A stretch of 64,000 nucleotides of DNA, from assembly GCF_031769215.1 (NCBI RefSeq), contig NW_026781921.1, positions 1,426,001-1,490,000 of the forward strand, in the 5' to 3' direction. Of this stretch, positions 43,757 to 53,730 are shown piece after piece; the stretch's first letter is position 1, and each line of letters opens with the position of its first letter. Origin of the DNA: Ylistrum balloti (Eukaryota). Both the position numbers and the translations under genes were made by a program. Under the pieces are notes generated by a model, which was not told the origin of the DNA, made no database searches, and worked only from the letters and a program-made list of their open reading frames with translations.

Positions 43757-43823
43757 CTTTGCATGTCCTTGACCTCCACAACCTTTCCAAAGGTACCTTC
43801 GCCTAGGGTGGAAACAATTTCAT
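43757..43823 (-). CDS. CLK2: CLK exon (Y)EIVSTLGEGTFGKVVEVKDMQ(R), Gly-rich loop, 67 nt
   Basis: ttgcag|AT ... AG|gtaggt; GxGxFG motif. Confidence 0.96.
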
Positions 43824-44623
43824 CTGCAAACAAAATAACCACACCAGTAAATTCACATGCATTTGATAAACAATCCACATTGAAATACATCAAAATGGAA
43901 GAGAAAATAGAACTATTAGAATTGGTTAATTCCCTGGGGAAATGCCAAGGTAGTGATTACTATGAGAAAAGCTTCCATTACTTTCAGAAACATCCTCGAA
44001 AAGTTCCCATGAAATTGCTTCAAGCTCATGGTAATTGGACTAAAGTTCTGATCAAAAGAGTGAAAGGCATGAAATCAATTATAAATGTGGACGCTTTTCC
44101 CCCATCCCCGGACATGTGCTACCATTTGCTAAACACCCTGTAAACAAAACTCTTCAAAATGAGAACATCTATATGTATGCTATATGTGATAAAGATATAA
44201 ATTGGAGTTTGTTATATTTGGCAGCCAATAATACTCAGATGGTTACCATTGCACTAAGGGAAATAACTCATCTTATGCAACAACCTCCAAATGGTAATAA
44301 CAATACATGTAATATTTCACAATATTCTATTATCAATGATTATTGATGCAGAACTACAAAGCATAATTCCTATAATTCCAGAAAACCCAAACCCGTTTTC
44401 CTTGTGTTTCATGGTACTTAATAAATGAAAAAGTGTGGGAGGGGTAATTCTCTTGGAACTCTTCTGTAGCGTTATCCCTTCGAATGTTATTCAATATCAT
44501 ATAGACCAAATATGGTCAAAATGTTTTGGACATTGAAGGTCAATCGAAGGGATAATACACAAAATAGGGGACACATATGATGCAAGATATAGTCTAGGCT
44601 AAACGTTACGAAAAGAGGTGTAC

Positions 44624-44708
44624 ATCGTGCTTGTAGGACATCGCCCGGCTGATAGATCAGATGGCCTTCTTCATCGTCCACAACCCTCGGACCAGCCTCA
44701 CTTTCATC
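44624..44708 (-). CDS. CLK2: CLK exon DESEAGPRVVDDEEGHLIYQPGDVLQAR(Y), 85 nt; equivalent of the regulated vertebrate CLK exon 4
   Basis: caacag|GAT acceptor and T|gtacac donor. The DDEEGHLI...GD.L..RY motif is typical of CLKs. Phase 0 in, phase 1 out. Confidence 0.92.
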
Positions 44709-45039
44709 CTGTTGCATCATCCCCACAACCACCAGGTGGCAGCACCCCAGCAATCACCCAACAGCAAAACAGCATCATCATGTCGTGGTAAGGGATGGCA
44801 GGAAGGCAGCACGGATGATACCCCAAACATCGTTCATTCATATTCAGATTTAATGATAGACAGCCCATAGTGTAGTCGGATCATTTTCATTGTCGGTTGA
44901 CCGGCAAGTCGAGTGGTAGGGCGCACATGAGATAGATAAGGGAGGCGAATGTGTCACAAAAAAATTACATCAGGACATCATCATCAATCAGCGTGTGCAA
45001 CATACATAACATTAAATGAGACAGCCACACTGCATGAGG

Positions 45040-45560
45040 TCAAATCTACAACATGGTGACCTGGATATGACCTTGGAGTTCATTTAAGATTCATAACCTG
45101 TGACCTAATTTCAAACTCAAAAGTTTTTTTTTTTTCAAAATAAATAATTCCTTTGATAAAAGCTATTTCTTATACATTCTTAATTAGTAATCGTAAATGA
45201 AAGTTTCTTTAACACAAGTTATCATTCCTAATAATCACTACAATATCTGTGGAGGGCAAAAATTCAGCAATGTTAAAAAGTTTAAATTTTCAAAAAGAAG
45301 AAGAAGAAAAAAAAAAAAGAAGTTAATTGCCACACATGTATTGATCAGAGAATGTAACAGTAAGCAAAGTTTCTATTATTTTCCATTAAATCAATCCTTT
45401 TTCCAGAAAAAAGTATGCATTTTTCACAGACATCCTGGGATGAGGATTCTTCGTGGGACGTGGCGTCACTGTAAGTGTGATGTATTGCCTAACAACAAGG
45501 TCACTTAAAGGTCACCAGGATAGACAGACCAAGCTAGTGGGGCTGCTTTAATATAGTCAG
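45040..45560. mobile_element. Degraded non-autonomous dispersed element
   Basis: gaccttg/ggtcac motifs; ends gacagaccaag...gctgctttaatatag. Confidence 0.3.
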
Positions 45561-46371
45561 TTGATATATACATAAACAAGAGGCTTTCACCAGTGTGCAA
45601 TTACCCTAAAATTCCCCTATATATCACTGGATGACAGTCTTTATATGTAGATTTACAGTATTAAATATTTAGCACTGCTGATTTATAAAACAACATTCAA
45701 TAAAATGTTTAAGAATACGAAAGACTTCATTTTTTATATAATAGCAATTTCATATAAATTATTCATCATTCATTTATTTAAAGGAAACATTAGATTTTTA
45801 TTACAAATGTTATAACTGAGGCATATGTATATATATTTATACATATATATGTATTTCTTCGTTTTTCTCAGGTGTAAGAAACATATCCATTAGTGACAAG
45901 ATAAATATTTTTTTCAGAACAGAAACTGCCAGACTTTGATTTTAAATTCATCAATCAATGAATATCTATTCTTCTTGCTTTCATCTCTGAAGACTAATAA
46001 AACAAATTTCTTGGCATTAACATATATGACCTTGAGCTATAGTGAAGTAACCTTGACCTTGAACTTCGAAGGTCTATTGATAGGATATATAAGTGTACAG
46101 GAGTGTTTGTCTAGTCACTGTACACTAACTGGGACCATATGCTACATGAGACCATAGTACCCTCTGTATGTCAACAATGACATGGATTCCATGGGCACTG
46201 TAATGAAGTGAAGAGAAGAAATTTGGCAACCAAGGCAACATACAAAGGATATTAGGCTGAATATCATGAGACACCAGTAAGTAACCAAAGGGAACAGCTG
46301 AATATAACCCACAATTACAGCTGAAAATCATCAACAATGTAGAGCAGCTAAAACAGCTAGAAACCAAAAGA

Positions 46372-46820
46372 ACAGCTCAGCACTGGTCCATGTCATGTAT
46401 CACAGCTAAGAACTGGTCAATGTCATGTATCACAGCTCATAACTGGTCCATGTCATGTATCACAGCTGAGGACTGGTCAATGTCATGTATCACAGCTCAG
46501 AACTGGTCAATGTCATGTATCACAGCTCATAACTGGTCCATGTCATTTATCACAGCTCAGAACTGGTCCATGTCATGTATCACAGCTCAGAACTGGTCCA
46601 TGTCATGTATCTAAGCTCATAACTGGTCAATGTCATCTATCACAGCTCATAACTGGTCCATGTCATGTATCACAGCTCATAACTGGTCAAGTTGAGAACT
46701 GGTCATTTTAATGAATCACAGTTGAGAACTGGTCATTTTAATGGATCACAGTTGAGAACTGGTCATTTTAATGGATCACAGCTGAGAACTGGTCATTTTA
46801 ATGGATCATAGTTGAGTACT
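46372..46820. repeat. 30-bp minisatellite (aactggtccatgtcatgtatcacagctcat) switching at ~46690 to a related variant
   Basis: ~10 copies of unit 1, then ~4 copies of gagaactggtcattttaatggatcacagtt. Confidence 0.94.
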
Positions 46821-49479
46821 GTTTTTCAGCACCTGATTTTGTAATGGGCCTGGCAAAAGCTATTTGATAACTCAAAGTCAATTCAGAATTATGAAATAAG
46901 TGACATTACTCGCAAATATTGTCTCAATCTATTAAGGTGGAAAGCCATTTTTGTTTACAGGTGACAGTGTTTTGTGCACAGACCATATCATATAAGACAC
47001 AGGAATTTACATAACCAGACTTTTCTTCAACAAATAAGGATTTTCTTTACATAGTTATCAATTAACCCCTTTGTGTGCATTTCTCAACAAAAACCAATTG
47101 TCATTGTACATAAGGTGATAAACTTGATATATATATATATCTATAAAACAATTTTTTTTAAAGAAGTTAAAAGACCATTTTACCATGATATCGGTTTAAA
47201 AAAGATCCCTAATCAATATTTCATACAACAAAGTATGTATACCTTGCCTAACAGTATACATTTACCACACCAACTTTTCACTAACAATCATTTTACCAGC
47301 TTAATTATTCTACATCAAACAAATATTACCAGTCTAACTTCATCAAACAGATTCCCTAGGACTTATGACCTGGTTATTGATACAGAGGGAGCTGACCCAC
47401 CAAATAACCATGGATATACAAAAACGTTTTCAGTGATTTTCCTTAATGTTTTAATAACTCTGCTTAAAGAGGTCAAGTATGGTTTGTCAGAGATCTGGGG
47501 CATGTCACAGTACAAATGTGATTAGTATTGGCATGCTGGTACACTGCCACTGTGGTTTGATGTCTATGTTGATACACGTGTTGGGTGTTTTCATGTTGCT
47601 ACATGCCACCATAGTTTTAAGTTAATACATCTTCATTTACTCTGGATTGCTGATGAATTGATAGATCGTATGGTTAAACATTGAAATATATCTCTATTCC
47701 CTCTCCAGACAGGGGGAAACAACAATATCTATTACATGTAAATCGTCTAAATTCGAAGTTTAACTGGAAACAAATGTAGATGTATTAATCCTTCAATCCC
47801 TTCAAATGAACTCTTCAAAGTTTGATTCCATACATGGAATGTTTCATTATACAGGTAGATGGGAGTGTCAGGGTTAATGGCGTTCAAAAATTTAATTTGA
47901 AACCCATGAAAGCTATGAAATGTTGCAGTAACGTAATACAAATTAATTAGTGTTTCATTAAGAACAGTTTTATCTGCAGCAAGCATGTCCATTTAGTCTC
48001 AATAACAATTTCTGGTCCTACAGTGTAGACACAAAACCTGATATCAAGTAGTGTTTCAGTAATGAAGAACAACCCACTACAACATTGAGAATATTGCAGC
48101 CAGTGGTTTACAACCTCTAATATTACAGTTTTATAGTCTATACTTTTAGAAAATTCCTGACTACAGTAAAAATTTGAATATCTTTAAGGAAATAATCAGC
48201 CATTCCTGTGATGTAAATTGGAAAGTCATTTTCCAGTATTTTTTCTATTGTTCACAAGATAAGGTAGTAAGTAACAACATTATGTTGTCTCCCTAGAAAT
48301 GATAAACAGTCCTTGTAGTCACCTGTCCATATTAACTGTCTACAAGCTTTTCCTGTTCTAAAGCTATTCAGTACCTGTTTATTTTACCATGAAGGCCAGA
48401 CCATTTTCTTTCTCCATCAGACTGAGAAAAACTATCTAACAAGCCAGAAAACCCTTGGAATCCCCAAAGTACAGATATACAAGGCTGGGTCAGATAACAC
48501 CACATTCCAATACACTCGTGGTTTTTATACCAGATCTAATCAAATTTATCAGGGGAGACAACTCTCTTTAAATGCAACGTTTAATGCCATTTTACTCCAC
48601 TTCTTCTGATATCTGGTCACCTGATGAGGTGACAAAGGCTATCTCATGCTTCAAATTACAAACTGGGAATTAAATTGGTTTCATTCAGATTTAAAGACCA
48701 GAAAGCTAAAAAGATTGGTAATACACAAAATGGCATCAGAAGGACGAATTAAAACGACTTTTGGATTGTTGTATTAATGACTCCCTTACAAAGAAGAAAC
48801 TTATATATAGAATGGTTGCATAAAAGGGAGCACAGGTGAAGACAGAAATCTAAGGTCATAAACCTTGGGAATTACAAAATTCGAGTGTGTTACAGTTTTG
48901 TTTATATCAACTAAGGATCTAAGCAGGTGACTGAAAAGCCACGTCTACTTCATGGGGTTGAAATTTCATCATTGTGAAGGAATGTATCAAAATATTTAAG
49001 GAAACTAAAACCATCAAAATATATATATATATGCCTCAGACATAATAATATAATTCTCTTCAACATGTAACTGATTATTTCAAAACATAAGAATATATCT
49101 CACGTTAATTCATTTGTAAGCAATTTTTGCCCCTAACTTGAACAATTTAGACCAATCAGCCCTATATTGAAAGTTCTGTTTGTTGTGAAATTCTCATGAA
49201 CATCACAGCTCATCAGGGAAGTGCTATTTATAAAAATAATAGCCGTATATATCTTGGTTCTCAAATAGCCACAGAGAATGGAAGTCTACCGGTCCATAAA
49301 ATTCAAAATCAATAAGAAGTCATGATAGATCAGAGTTGTACAGAAAGGAGAAGATAACCACGATAAGGTAAAGGGAGGTAACTTGGGTCTAGAAAAGAGA
49401 CTGATTGGTCCAAACAAGCTATAAAAAAAAAAAAACTGTTCAGATGTAACATAGGAAATGGCAATTAGAACTGACTTAC

Positions 49480-49647
49480 CGCGATATTCTGGTAGTCATT
49501 ATCATGTTTGTAGCTACTATAGCTGTACTGATTGTTGGTGAGAGAGCCATTGAGGCCAGATGAACTGGACGCTCCTGACAGGGTTTGTGTTGTAGGCATC
49601 ACTGCCCATTCCCTTATACCCGTCTGACTAAGGGCATCCACTCGCAT
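49480..49647 (-). CDS. Candidate alternative N-terminal coding exon MRVDALSQTGIREWAVMPTTQTLSGASSSSGLNGSLTNNQYSYSSYKHDNDYQNIA (56 aa)
   Basis: The open frame ends exactly at consensus donor GCG|gtaagt in phase 0, matching the 85-nt exon. There is an upstream in-frame stop at 49687-49689. Confidence 0.5.
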
Positions 49648-50260
49648 CTCAGACACACCATTGGATCTATCACAGCTAAAAACTTCTCACAATTCCTCTA
49701 TTTACAGCCTCACATCAGCTATTTCTTACCACAAAAATGACTAATTATGGTTCTTGGTCATCAAAAATAACTGAAAATAAGACGGAGGAGGAAACGTATT
49801 GAACAATCCTGTGGCCTTATTCCAATAAAACTGGATCGAAACTCCAGAAGAGATAAACACAGATATTATCCAATTGGTTCGCACAAAATCCAGCTAAATC
49901 CACTAGGGTCGGTAATGTAACTAAGGACAAGTGAAGCTGAGGTCTGTGTTACTGCTTTACAGGCAGGCTGGTAGGCCATACACACACACAAATATTATAC
50001 TGGGCTTCTCATCATATACACCGGGAGGAGGTATTCCCCAACACGAAACAGTTAGGATTGAAAACTCCACTAAAGTAGTGGAAACTTCTAGACAAGTTGG
50101 TAGAAAGTTCCAAAGTCACTGGCAGAAAGATAAATCCGAAATGTAGAAGGGTGATGTAGAGTGACAGAAGCCCTCACTGTGTTTCAGTGGGAGGATGTTG
50201 GCCCCCAGCGAGGTAGAGTAAGTAATTCTCCTCCCAACACACACTCCTCACCATCACCAG

Positions 50261-53039: not shown

Positions 53040-53730
53040 AAACATTCTATCAAACTTGTCAGATCTTAAGGTAACTAGTCAGAATGATTCTAACTGATAG
53101 TGAAACCATCCAGTAACCACTCAGAAATATTCTATCAAACTTGTCAGATCTTAAGGTAACTAGTCAGAATGATCCTAACTGATAGTGAAACCATCCAATA
53201 ACCACTCAGAAACATTCTATCAAACTTGTCAGATCTTAAGGTAACTAGTCAGAATGATCCTAACTGATAGTGAAACCATCCAGTAACCACTCAGAAATAT
53301 TCTATCAAACTTGTCAGATCTTAAGGTAACTAGTCAGAATGATCCTAACTGATAGTGAAACCATCCAATAACCACTCAGAAACATTCTATCAAACTTGTC
53401 AGATCTTAAGGTAACTAGTCAGAATGATCCTAACTGATAGTGAAACCATCCAGTAACCACTCAGAAATATTCTATCAAACTTGTCAGATCTTAAGGTAAC
53501 TAGTCAGAATGATCCTAACTGATAGTGAAACCATCCAGTAACCACTCAGAAACATTCTATCAAACTTGTCAGATCTTAAGGTAACTAGTCAGAATGATCC
53601 TAACTGATAGTGAAACCATCCAGTAACCACTCAGAAATATTCTATCAAACTTGTCAGTAAGGTAACTGATAGTGAAACCATCCAGTAACCACTCAGAAAT
53701 ATTCTATCAAACTTGTCAGATCTTAAGGTA
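53040..53730. repeat. 85-bp satellite, ~8 copies, with alternating variants
   Basis: ttctatc at 53045, 53130, 53215, ... Confidence 0.96.

Follow-up and report, generated by a model that had tools for sequence, protein, structure and literature searches.

In the CLK (LAMMER) kinase gene of the scallop Ylistrum balloti, an 85-nt exon is preceded by 319 nt of intron in which the transcribed strand contains no AG dinucleotide, and a zone of similar length and equally free of AG stands before the orthologous exon in species of three phyla. This zone is probably the spacer of a distant-branch-point 3' splice site in an ancient CLK autoregulatory cassette. The exon belongs to the known class of exons with long AG-exclusion zones, of which it is a new, deeply conserved member, and a distant branch point is well supported as a prediction from the sequence. 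Its sharing by molluscs, an annelid and a sea star suggests that the zone reflects an ancient, unusually distant splicing signal. The initial annotation of this DNA, which had proposed a regulated exon with a branch point some 250-270 nt upstream, was right in kind, and its interpretation is partly supported by the results below.

The CLK locus and the 85-nt exon

The gene lies on the minus strand of the window, that is, the whole 64-kb stretch of AT-rich Y. balloti DNA that was analysed. Its long terminal ORF has 100% identity to a Y. balloti protein, and stretches of 19 and 11 residues of CLK sequence are encoded by separate exons of the gene. The features around the 85-nt exon are as follows, in order of transcription (a slash marks an exon boundary).

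49474-49690, minus strand: alternative first exon, encoding MRVDALSQTGIREW...YQNIA, with a GTAAGT donor; used in the NCBI models of three scallops
44711-45029, minus strand: AG-free zone of 319 nt, bounded upstream by the AG at 45031-45030 and downstream by the acceptor at 44710-44709
44709-44710, minus strand: acceptor AG in the context acag/GAT, without an adjacent pyrimidine tract
44624-44708, minus strand: 85-nt cassette exon (read 44708-44624), encoding DESEAGPRVVDDEEGHLIYQPGDVLQAR plus 1 nt; NCBI models join to it
44618-44623, minus strand: donor of the 85-nt exon, GAT/GTACAC, weak
44599-44613, minus strand: intronic element of 15 nt, UUUCGUAACGUUUAG, 11-25 nt past the donor
43824-44623, minus strand: downstream intron of 800 nt, kept in RNA contigs of a relative and containing a conserved hairpin at 44459-44567
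43757-43823, minus strand: next exon and start of the kinase domain, YEIVSTLGEGTFGKVVEVKDMQR, with an ordinary acceptor, ttttgtttgcag

The 85-nt exon splices to YEIVSTLGEGTFGK at 43823, and the resulting peptide junction, DDEEGHLIYQPGDVLQAR/YEIVSTLGEGTFGK, lies directly before the glycine loop of the kinase and is the same in all homologues. By its place in the protein, the exon corresponds to mammalian CLK1 exon 4. Since its length is 1 mod 3, skipping would place a stop seven codons into the next exon, which in the shifted frame reads ATG AAA TTG TTT CCA CCC TAG (taken directly from the two exon sequences), and would thereby truncate the kinase. The orthologous exons of the nine species compared below measure 85, 85, 85, 85, 106, 91, 94, 88 and 136 nt, and all nine lengths are 1 mod 3. 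The Y. balloti exon is purine-rich, with GAR motifs.

Both splice sites of the exon are weak. The pyrimidine fraction at its acceptor (0.35 at positions -23 to -4 and 0.42 at -43 to -4) is the lowest among the 11 acceptors of the gene, in agreement with the earlier statement that no local polypyrimidine tract is present. Its donor matches MAG/GTRAGT at 4/9 positions, compared with 7-9 in the other donors, and is the weakest of the gene; the weak GAT/GTAC form is conserved in 9/9 species. The element UUUCGUAACGUUUAG just past this donor is near-identical in 7/7 molluscs, partial in the annelid (where its 3' end differs) and faintly recognisable in the sea star. It resembles a branch site and an AG spaced too closely for use.

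Onto exactly the acceptor of the 85-nt exon, the NCBI models of four scallops splice either an RS-rich exon that ends at about 57715 or an RS-less alternative first exon. When the exon at 49474-49690 is joined to the 85-nt exon, the product is a CLK without the RS-rich N-terminus, and oyster, clam and mussel models likewise have RS-less N-termini spliced onto this exon.

Several other features were observed in the flanking introns. The hairpin at 44459-44567 (minus strand, 57-165 nt past the 85-nt exon) comprises about 27 base pairs, with a minimum free energy of -40.4 kcal/mol over 44455-44575 (z = -7.0 against shuffles); its stems are invariant in four scallops and its loop is variable, including a 6-nt deletion in Argopecten. 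Rfam returned just weak miRNA-like matches for it, on both strands; it may act as a structural element of the intron that regulates the weak donor, or it may be a miRNA precursor. Farther upstream, at about 790-900 nt from the exon, a second conserved island (45491-45603, minus strand) is single-copy, has 74% identity to Argopecten and has no Rfam match; it is covered by RNA contigs of a Pecten-like relative in 3/4 runs, and it may belong to the retained intron or be an element still lacking annotation. The same intron carries a minisatellite at 46294-46821 (30-bp period, about 15 copies, 90-95% matches), which lies outside the stretch used in the RNA comparison.

Absence of AG in Ylistrum balloti and across phyla

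The zone contains 65 A and 76 G, from which about 15.5 AGs would be expected, and none is present. Exactly as first reported, no AG occurs between the acceptor and 45030-45031 (positions 45029-44711). In 20,000 mononucleotide shuffles of the zone, AG was never absent. Within the zone, GA occurs at 1.36 times, CT at 1.04 times and UG at 1.9 times expectation; GA and CT thus show normal frequencies, and it is AG on the sense (transcribed) strand alone that is excluded.

A long AG-free run is, by itself, no evidence of a splicing feature. Three other minus-strand runs of more than 200 nt occur in the window (815-450, 450-107 and 36555-36286), and the last of these is a CT-rich low-complexity repeat, which leads to the reading that the zone is likewise a product of chance or composition (low complexity or a repeat), or else that it hides an intronic small RNA or a coding extension. 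Such an origin is extremely improbable. The zone has a balanced composition, is not low-complexity, has no tandem repeat called inside it and is single-copy in the 648-Mb assembly, and a repeat or transposon was rejected on this last ground; the shuffles also argue against chance. Strings resembling C/D boxes (UGAUGA/CUGA) do occur at 44969-44991, as a small RNA would suggest, yet no Rfam family reached threshold in the zone (best E > 0.04, far under gathering scores), and a C/D-box snoRNA was rejected. Stops in all three reading frames stand against a coding extension; an alternative start was rejected together with it, the in-frame ATG just upstream of the acceptor being kept in scallops only. 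Finally, the zone folds less stably than dinucleotide shuffles in 9/9 species (z = +0.6 to +2.5), and by the same measure a hairpin bridging the distant tract to the AG was rejected.

The comparison across species covered Y. balloti and three further scallops (Argopecten irradians, Pecten maximus and Mizuhopecten yessoensis), the bivalves Potamilus streckersoni and Mercenaria mercenaria, the abalone Haliotis asinina, the annelid Owenia fusiformis and the sea star Asterias amurensis. The AG-free zone before the orthologous exon measures 319, 320, 312, 259, 261, 298, 258, 300 and 252 nt in these nine species of three phyla, with 300 nt in Owenia and 252 nt in Asterias. At the other acceptors of the same nine genes, the median AG-free distance is about 31 nt, and it exceeds 250 nt in only one of about 125. 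This single case, a 274-nt run in Mizuhopecten at 53145 of its gene locus, is probably a species-specific repeat, since the other scallops have no comparably long run at their later acceptors.

Across the four scallops, the intron sequence is no more alike than noise beyond about -300, and identity rises inside the zone to peaks of 0.93 (-259 to -220), 0.95 (-139 to -100) and 0.90 (-59 to -20), which are as high as in the exon; it remains high for more than 100 nt past the donor. The block is thus kept, as a distant branch point had been expected to require: a zone of 252-320 nt in 9/9 species, with scallop sub-blocks at 0.90-0.95. When the scallop substitutions were placed at random, the zone was left AG-free with P = 0.024, 0.037 and <0.0002, indicating that the substitutions that occurred avoided making AG.

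Further afield, the zones of Haliotis, Potamilus and Mercenaria match one another at the orthologous place (E = 5e-8 to 2e-5), and their common core consists of UGACA, a pyrimidine tract and AUCWCAUAUGU. The similarity of this core to that of scallops is visible by eye only and is non-significant (E = 4.6 at the right place in Haliotis). In nhmmer searches, the Owenia and Asterias zones had no detectable similarity to any other zone, so that a by-eye impression of a distal core conserved in these two species was unsupported. That both zones are nevertheless AG-free implies that the absence of AG is itself conserved. A composition plan is also shared by 6/6 lineages, with C exceeding G from about -240 to -81 and G strongly exceeding C in the last 40 nt.

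These comparisons bear on a second alternative, namely that AG is missing as a by-product of a conserved protein-binding block (an MBNL/CELF-type platform rich in YGCY and UG) with no selection on AG. The exon-like conservation of the scallop block, with four-way identity of 0.9-0.95 in three sub-blocks, and the enrichment of YGCY and UG-rich motifs are what such a platform would produce. We consider it very unlikely, however, because poorly conserved sub-blocks and the dissimilar lineages Owenia and Asterias are equally AG-free, scallop substitutions avoided creating AG, GA and CT remain at normal levels, and Potamilus and Mercenaria are nearly without YGCY. Selection appears to have acted on the absence of AG itself, and to have done so over hundreds of millions of years.

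Candidate branch sites and motifs within the zone

The sequence elements recognised inside the zone are, from its upstream to its downstream end:

44969-44991, minus strand: two CTGAT motifs, at 44991-44987 and 44973-44969, with the A at -280 and -262
44918-44964, minus strand: conserved distal core, with T7 at 44964-44958, UGACAC at 44956-44951 and then a C/U tract of 85% pyrimidine
44738-44811, minus strand: cluster of eight YGCY motifs, six of them within 44738-44801
44711-44770, minus strand: proximal G/U-rich segment, with 25 G and 21 T in 60 nt, GGGG at -16 to -13 and GAUG, GCUG and GGUG motifs

Within the distal core, which has a four-way scallop identity of 0.93, the candidate branch A in UGACAC is position 44954, 246 nt upstream of the exon; all four scallops keep UGACAC unchanged, and Haliotis and Mercenaria have the identical sequence. 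The initial annotation had instead proposed the CTGAT motifs, which it placed at 44959-44963 and 44977-44981. The motifs lie 10 nt from these positions and are not conserved across scallops (one is altered in Pecten and the other deleted in Argopecten); as neither is kept at the aligned position in all scallops, CTGAT was rejected as a conserved branch. The U7 and the C/U tract reported to follow these motifs are both present, the T7 at 44964-44958 enclosing the first of the two intervals that had been assigned to CTGAT. No heptamer in the scallop zone matches UACUAAC at 5/7 positions or more, and all branch candidates are degenerate. The candidates are distributed from the zone edge to the tract, and none has a strong consensus.

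A proximal branch is the main rival explanation. According to this reading, a degenerate UGAU-type branch lies about 40-55 nt upstream of the exon, and the zone is kept AG-free for another RNA-level reason; possibly no cryptic 3' splice site is to be available during long intron detention, or the intron is kept clear of purine-rich SR/TRA2 sites of the GAAG/AGGA type, which would confine definition to the exon. Branch-like yUnAy/UGAU motifs do occur near the acceptor: Asterias has CTGAT at -39, Owenia has it at -42 and -53, and scallops have GUGAU at -46. The best pyrimidine tract of Owenia ends just 55 nt from the exon, the distal part of the zone is without a strong branch consensus, and the flanking introns appear to be retained in RNA. 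The scanning model, on the other hand, gives no reason for a proximal branch to exclude AGs that lie 250-320 nt away, and in the nine species AG is missing in every context. In eight of the nine, it is the distal pyrimidine tract that is the strongest and best conserved, and the core with its tract of 85% pyrimidine comes to an end 172-224 nt upstream of the exon. In addition, the AG that bounds the zone follows a branch-like motif by just 3-5 nt in Owenia (UACUAAAG), Asterias (UUGACCAAG) and Argopecten (CUGAUUUAG), as expected if branches lie at the distal edge. A proximal branch is for these reasons rather unlikely, and the distant branch point is preferred in what follows.

The segment next to the acceptor had been described as G-rich over 45 nt. 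Its G-richness holds (25 G in the last 60 nt), whereas the string quoted for it spans 40 nt (44748-44709). The YGCY (MBNL-type) motifs, for which eight copies had been counted in 44738-44801, number six in that interval, and eight are reached only in 44738-44811; they are nonetheless enriched, with 0.39 expected per 64 nt from the window and, when the zone is shuffled, P of about 0.007. Over the last 100 nt, YGCY occurs 5-8 times in scallops, six times in Asterias, four in Owenia, two in Haliotis, once in Potamilus and not at all in Mercenaria. Its near absence from Potamilus and Mercenaria, lineages that keep the AG-free zone, means that MBNL-type control is not the conserved feature, and the cluster was rejected as such.

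RNA evidence, proposed mechanism and relation to known systems

RNA evidence came from assembled contigs of a Pecten maximus-like relative (assigned by indels), over a stretch that excludes the upstream exons. Twenty runs of this relative cover small shares of the stretch, and four runs from four studies were examined. The spliced joint from 44624 to 43823 and the junction to the following exon are present in the four runs. Other contigs extend through at least 698 nt of the upstream intron, across the AG-free zone and the whole exon, and a further set leads from the exon across all 800 nt of the downstream intron. Both introns flanking the exon thus appear to be retained in the relative's RNA, which would match mammalian CLK1/4, where retention of both introns flanking exon 4 is known. 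The k-mer depth of the intron-bearing contigs is about a quarter to a third of that of the spliced exon, and one contig breaks exactly at 44709. These contigs could in part be nascent RNA or DNA carry-over.

The next exon's Met is the start of Pecten maximus isoform X3, which is what skipping of the 85-nt exon would lead one to expect. When truncated protein products of exon skipping were searched for, the single match was an unspliced contig. The evidence that the 85-nt exon is regulated is indirect and consists of four points, with no skipped junction among them: its orthology to CLK1 exon 4, its frame-shifting length, the apparent retention of both introns in the relative and the Met-start isoform of Pecten.

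The initial annotation had called long AG-exclusion zones a hallmark of regulated exons, and this association is borne out by a survey that ties such zones both to distant branch points and to alternative exons (Gooding et al. 2006, PMC1431707). Zones of at least 150 nt were found there in only 165 human exons, and PTB exon 11, alpha-tropomyosin exon 3 and GABBR1 exon 23 are examples of the class (PMC1431707). The scallop exon resembles this class in a zone well beyond 150 nt, in a tract and branch-like motifs at the 5' end of the zone, in the lack of a proximal tract, in regulatory-looking sequence between tract and AG and in a zone kept in orthologues even where it is unalignable; with PTB exon 11, it also shares a frame-shifting exon in a splicing regulator. 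It differs in that the scallop branch is only predicted and has no strong consensus, and in that conservation spans three phyla here as against human, mouse and Fugu in the survey (PMC1431707). A related arrangement is that of REPA G-tracts, which lie between the pyrimidine tract and the 3' AG and are associated with distant branch motifs and alternative exons (Sohail & Xie; PMC6339879). The G-runs of the scallop zone (GGGG at -16 to -13) are similarly placed, although tract and AG are separated here by about 200 nt rather than a few.

Another close parallel is mammalian CLK1/CLK4 exon 4, through which, together with its detained flanking introns, CLKs tune their own level (PMC3187705, PMC5602073, PMC11571805). 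The introns flanking this exon are retained, and a conserved exon-proximal region suffices for this (PMC3187705, PMC5602073); SRSF3 represses the exon-4 3' splice site via intron 3, by a mechanism described as undetermined, and TRA2beta acts through an exonic enhancer of exon 4 (PMC11571805). The scallop and mammalian exons share their position in the protein (DDEEGHL...ARY/EIV, just before the kinase domain), a length that is not a multiple of 3, so that skipping truncates the kinase, highly conserved exon-proximal intron sequence, the presence of both flanking introns in RNA assemblies of polyadenylated type and a purine-rich exon that would suit a TRA2/SR enhancer. By analogy, the mammalian TRA2beta enhancer and SRSF3 repression would fit the scallop layout. 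In contrast, an AG-free zone or a distant branch does not figure in the published descriptions of the mammalian mechanism cited here (PMC3187705, PMC5602073, PMC11571805).

Taken with these parallels, the layout suggests a mechanism, for which we infer the branch position, the trans-acting factors and autoregulation in molluscs. U2AF65 and U2 snRNP would assemble some 170-330 nt upstream of the exon (about 44918-44991 in the scallop), on a branch site with a strong pyrimidine tract, after which the spliceosome would use the first downstream AG, kept by selection as the only one for about 250-320 nt. The intervening spacer, C-rich in its middle, G/U-rich with G-runs beside the AG and without a local tract, would be free to bind repressors. 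Together with the very weak donor, it would make the exon dependent on its own purine-rich enhancer, and hence on phosphorylation of SR/TRA2 proteins by CLK itself. As a result, both flanking introns would be removed slowly and so be retained, or else the frame-shifting exon would be skipped, and the message would lack the kinase or be prone to NMD.

SR proteins owe their phosphorylation state to CLK kinases. For the switch that controls these kinases, the architecture proposed here is a concrete one, in which a spacer open to repressors separates a distant branch and tract from a single AG. The present comparison indicates that the module itself (a frame-shifting exon, weak sites, conserved flanks and intron retention) is older than the protostome-deuterostome split. 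A human exon with a 288-nt zone, listed as 'clk2 kinase' (PMC1431707) and known here by that annotation line alone, raises by analogy the prospect that the architecture may reach vertebrates. More tentatively, the AG-free spacer, the distant branch and tract, the G/U-rich branchless acceptor and the weak GAT/GUAC donor might together be a bilaterian-wide cis-architecture with an age above 550 million years, and as such the physical basis on which CLK introns are detained and exon 4 is switched. If this were true, the long 'reach' of the second step and the repressor-binding spacer would make the 3' splice site a phosphorylation- and temperature-sensitive step, which would explain how repression of the exon-4 3' splice site by SR proteins, SRSF3 among them, can come from inside intron 3. 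Any new AG within the zone is predicted to make a premature acceptor, and annotators and variant interpreters should therefore treat the whole zone of about 300 nt as splice-critical.
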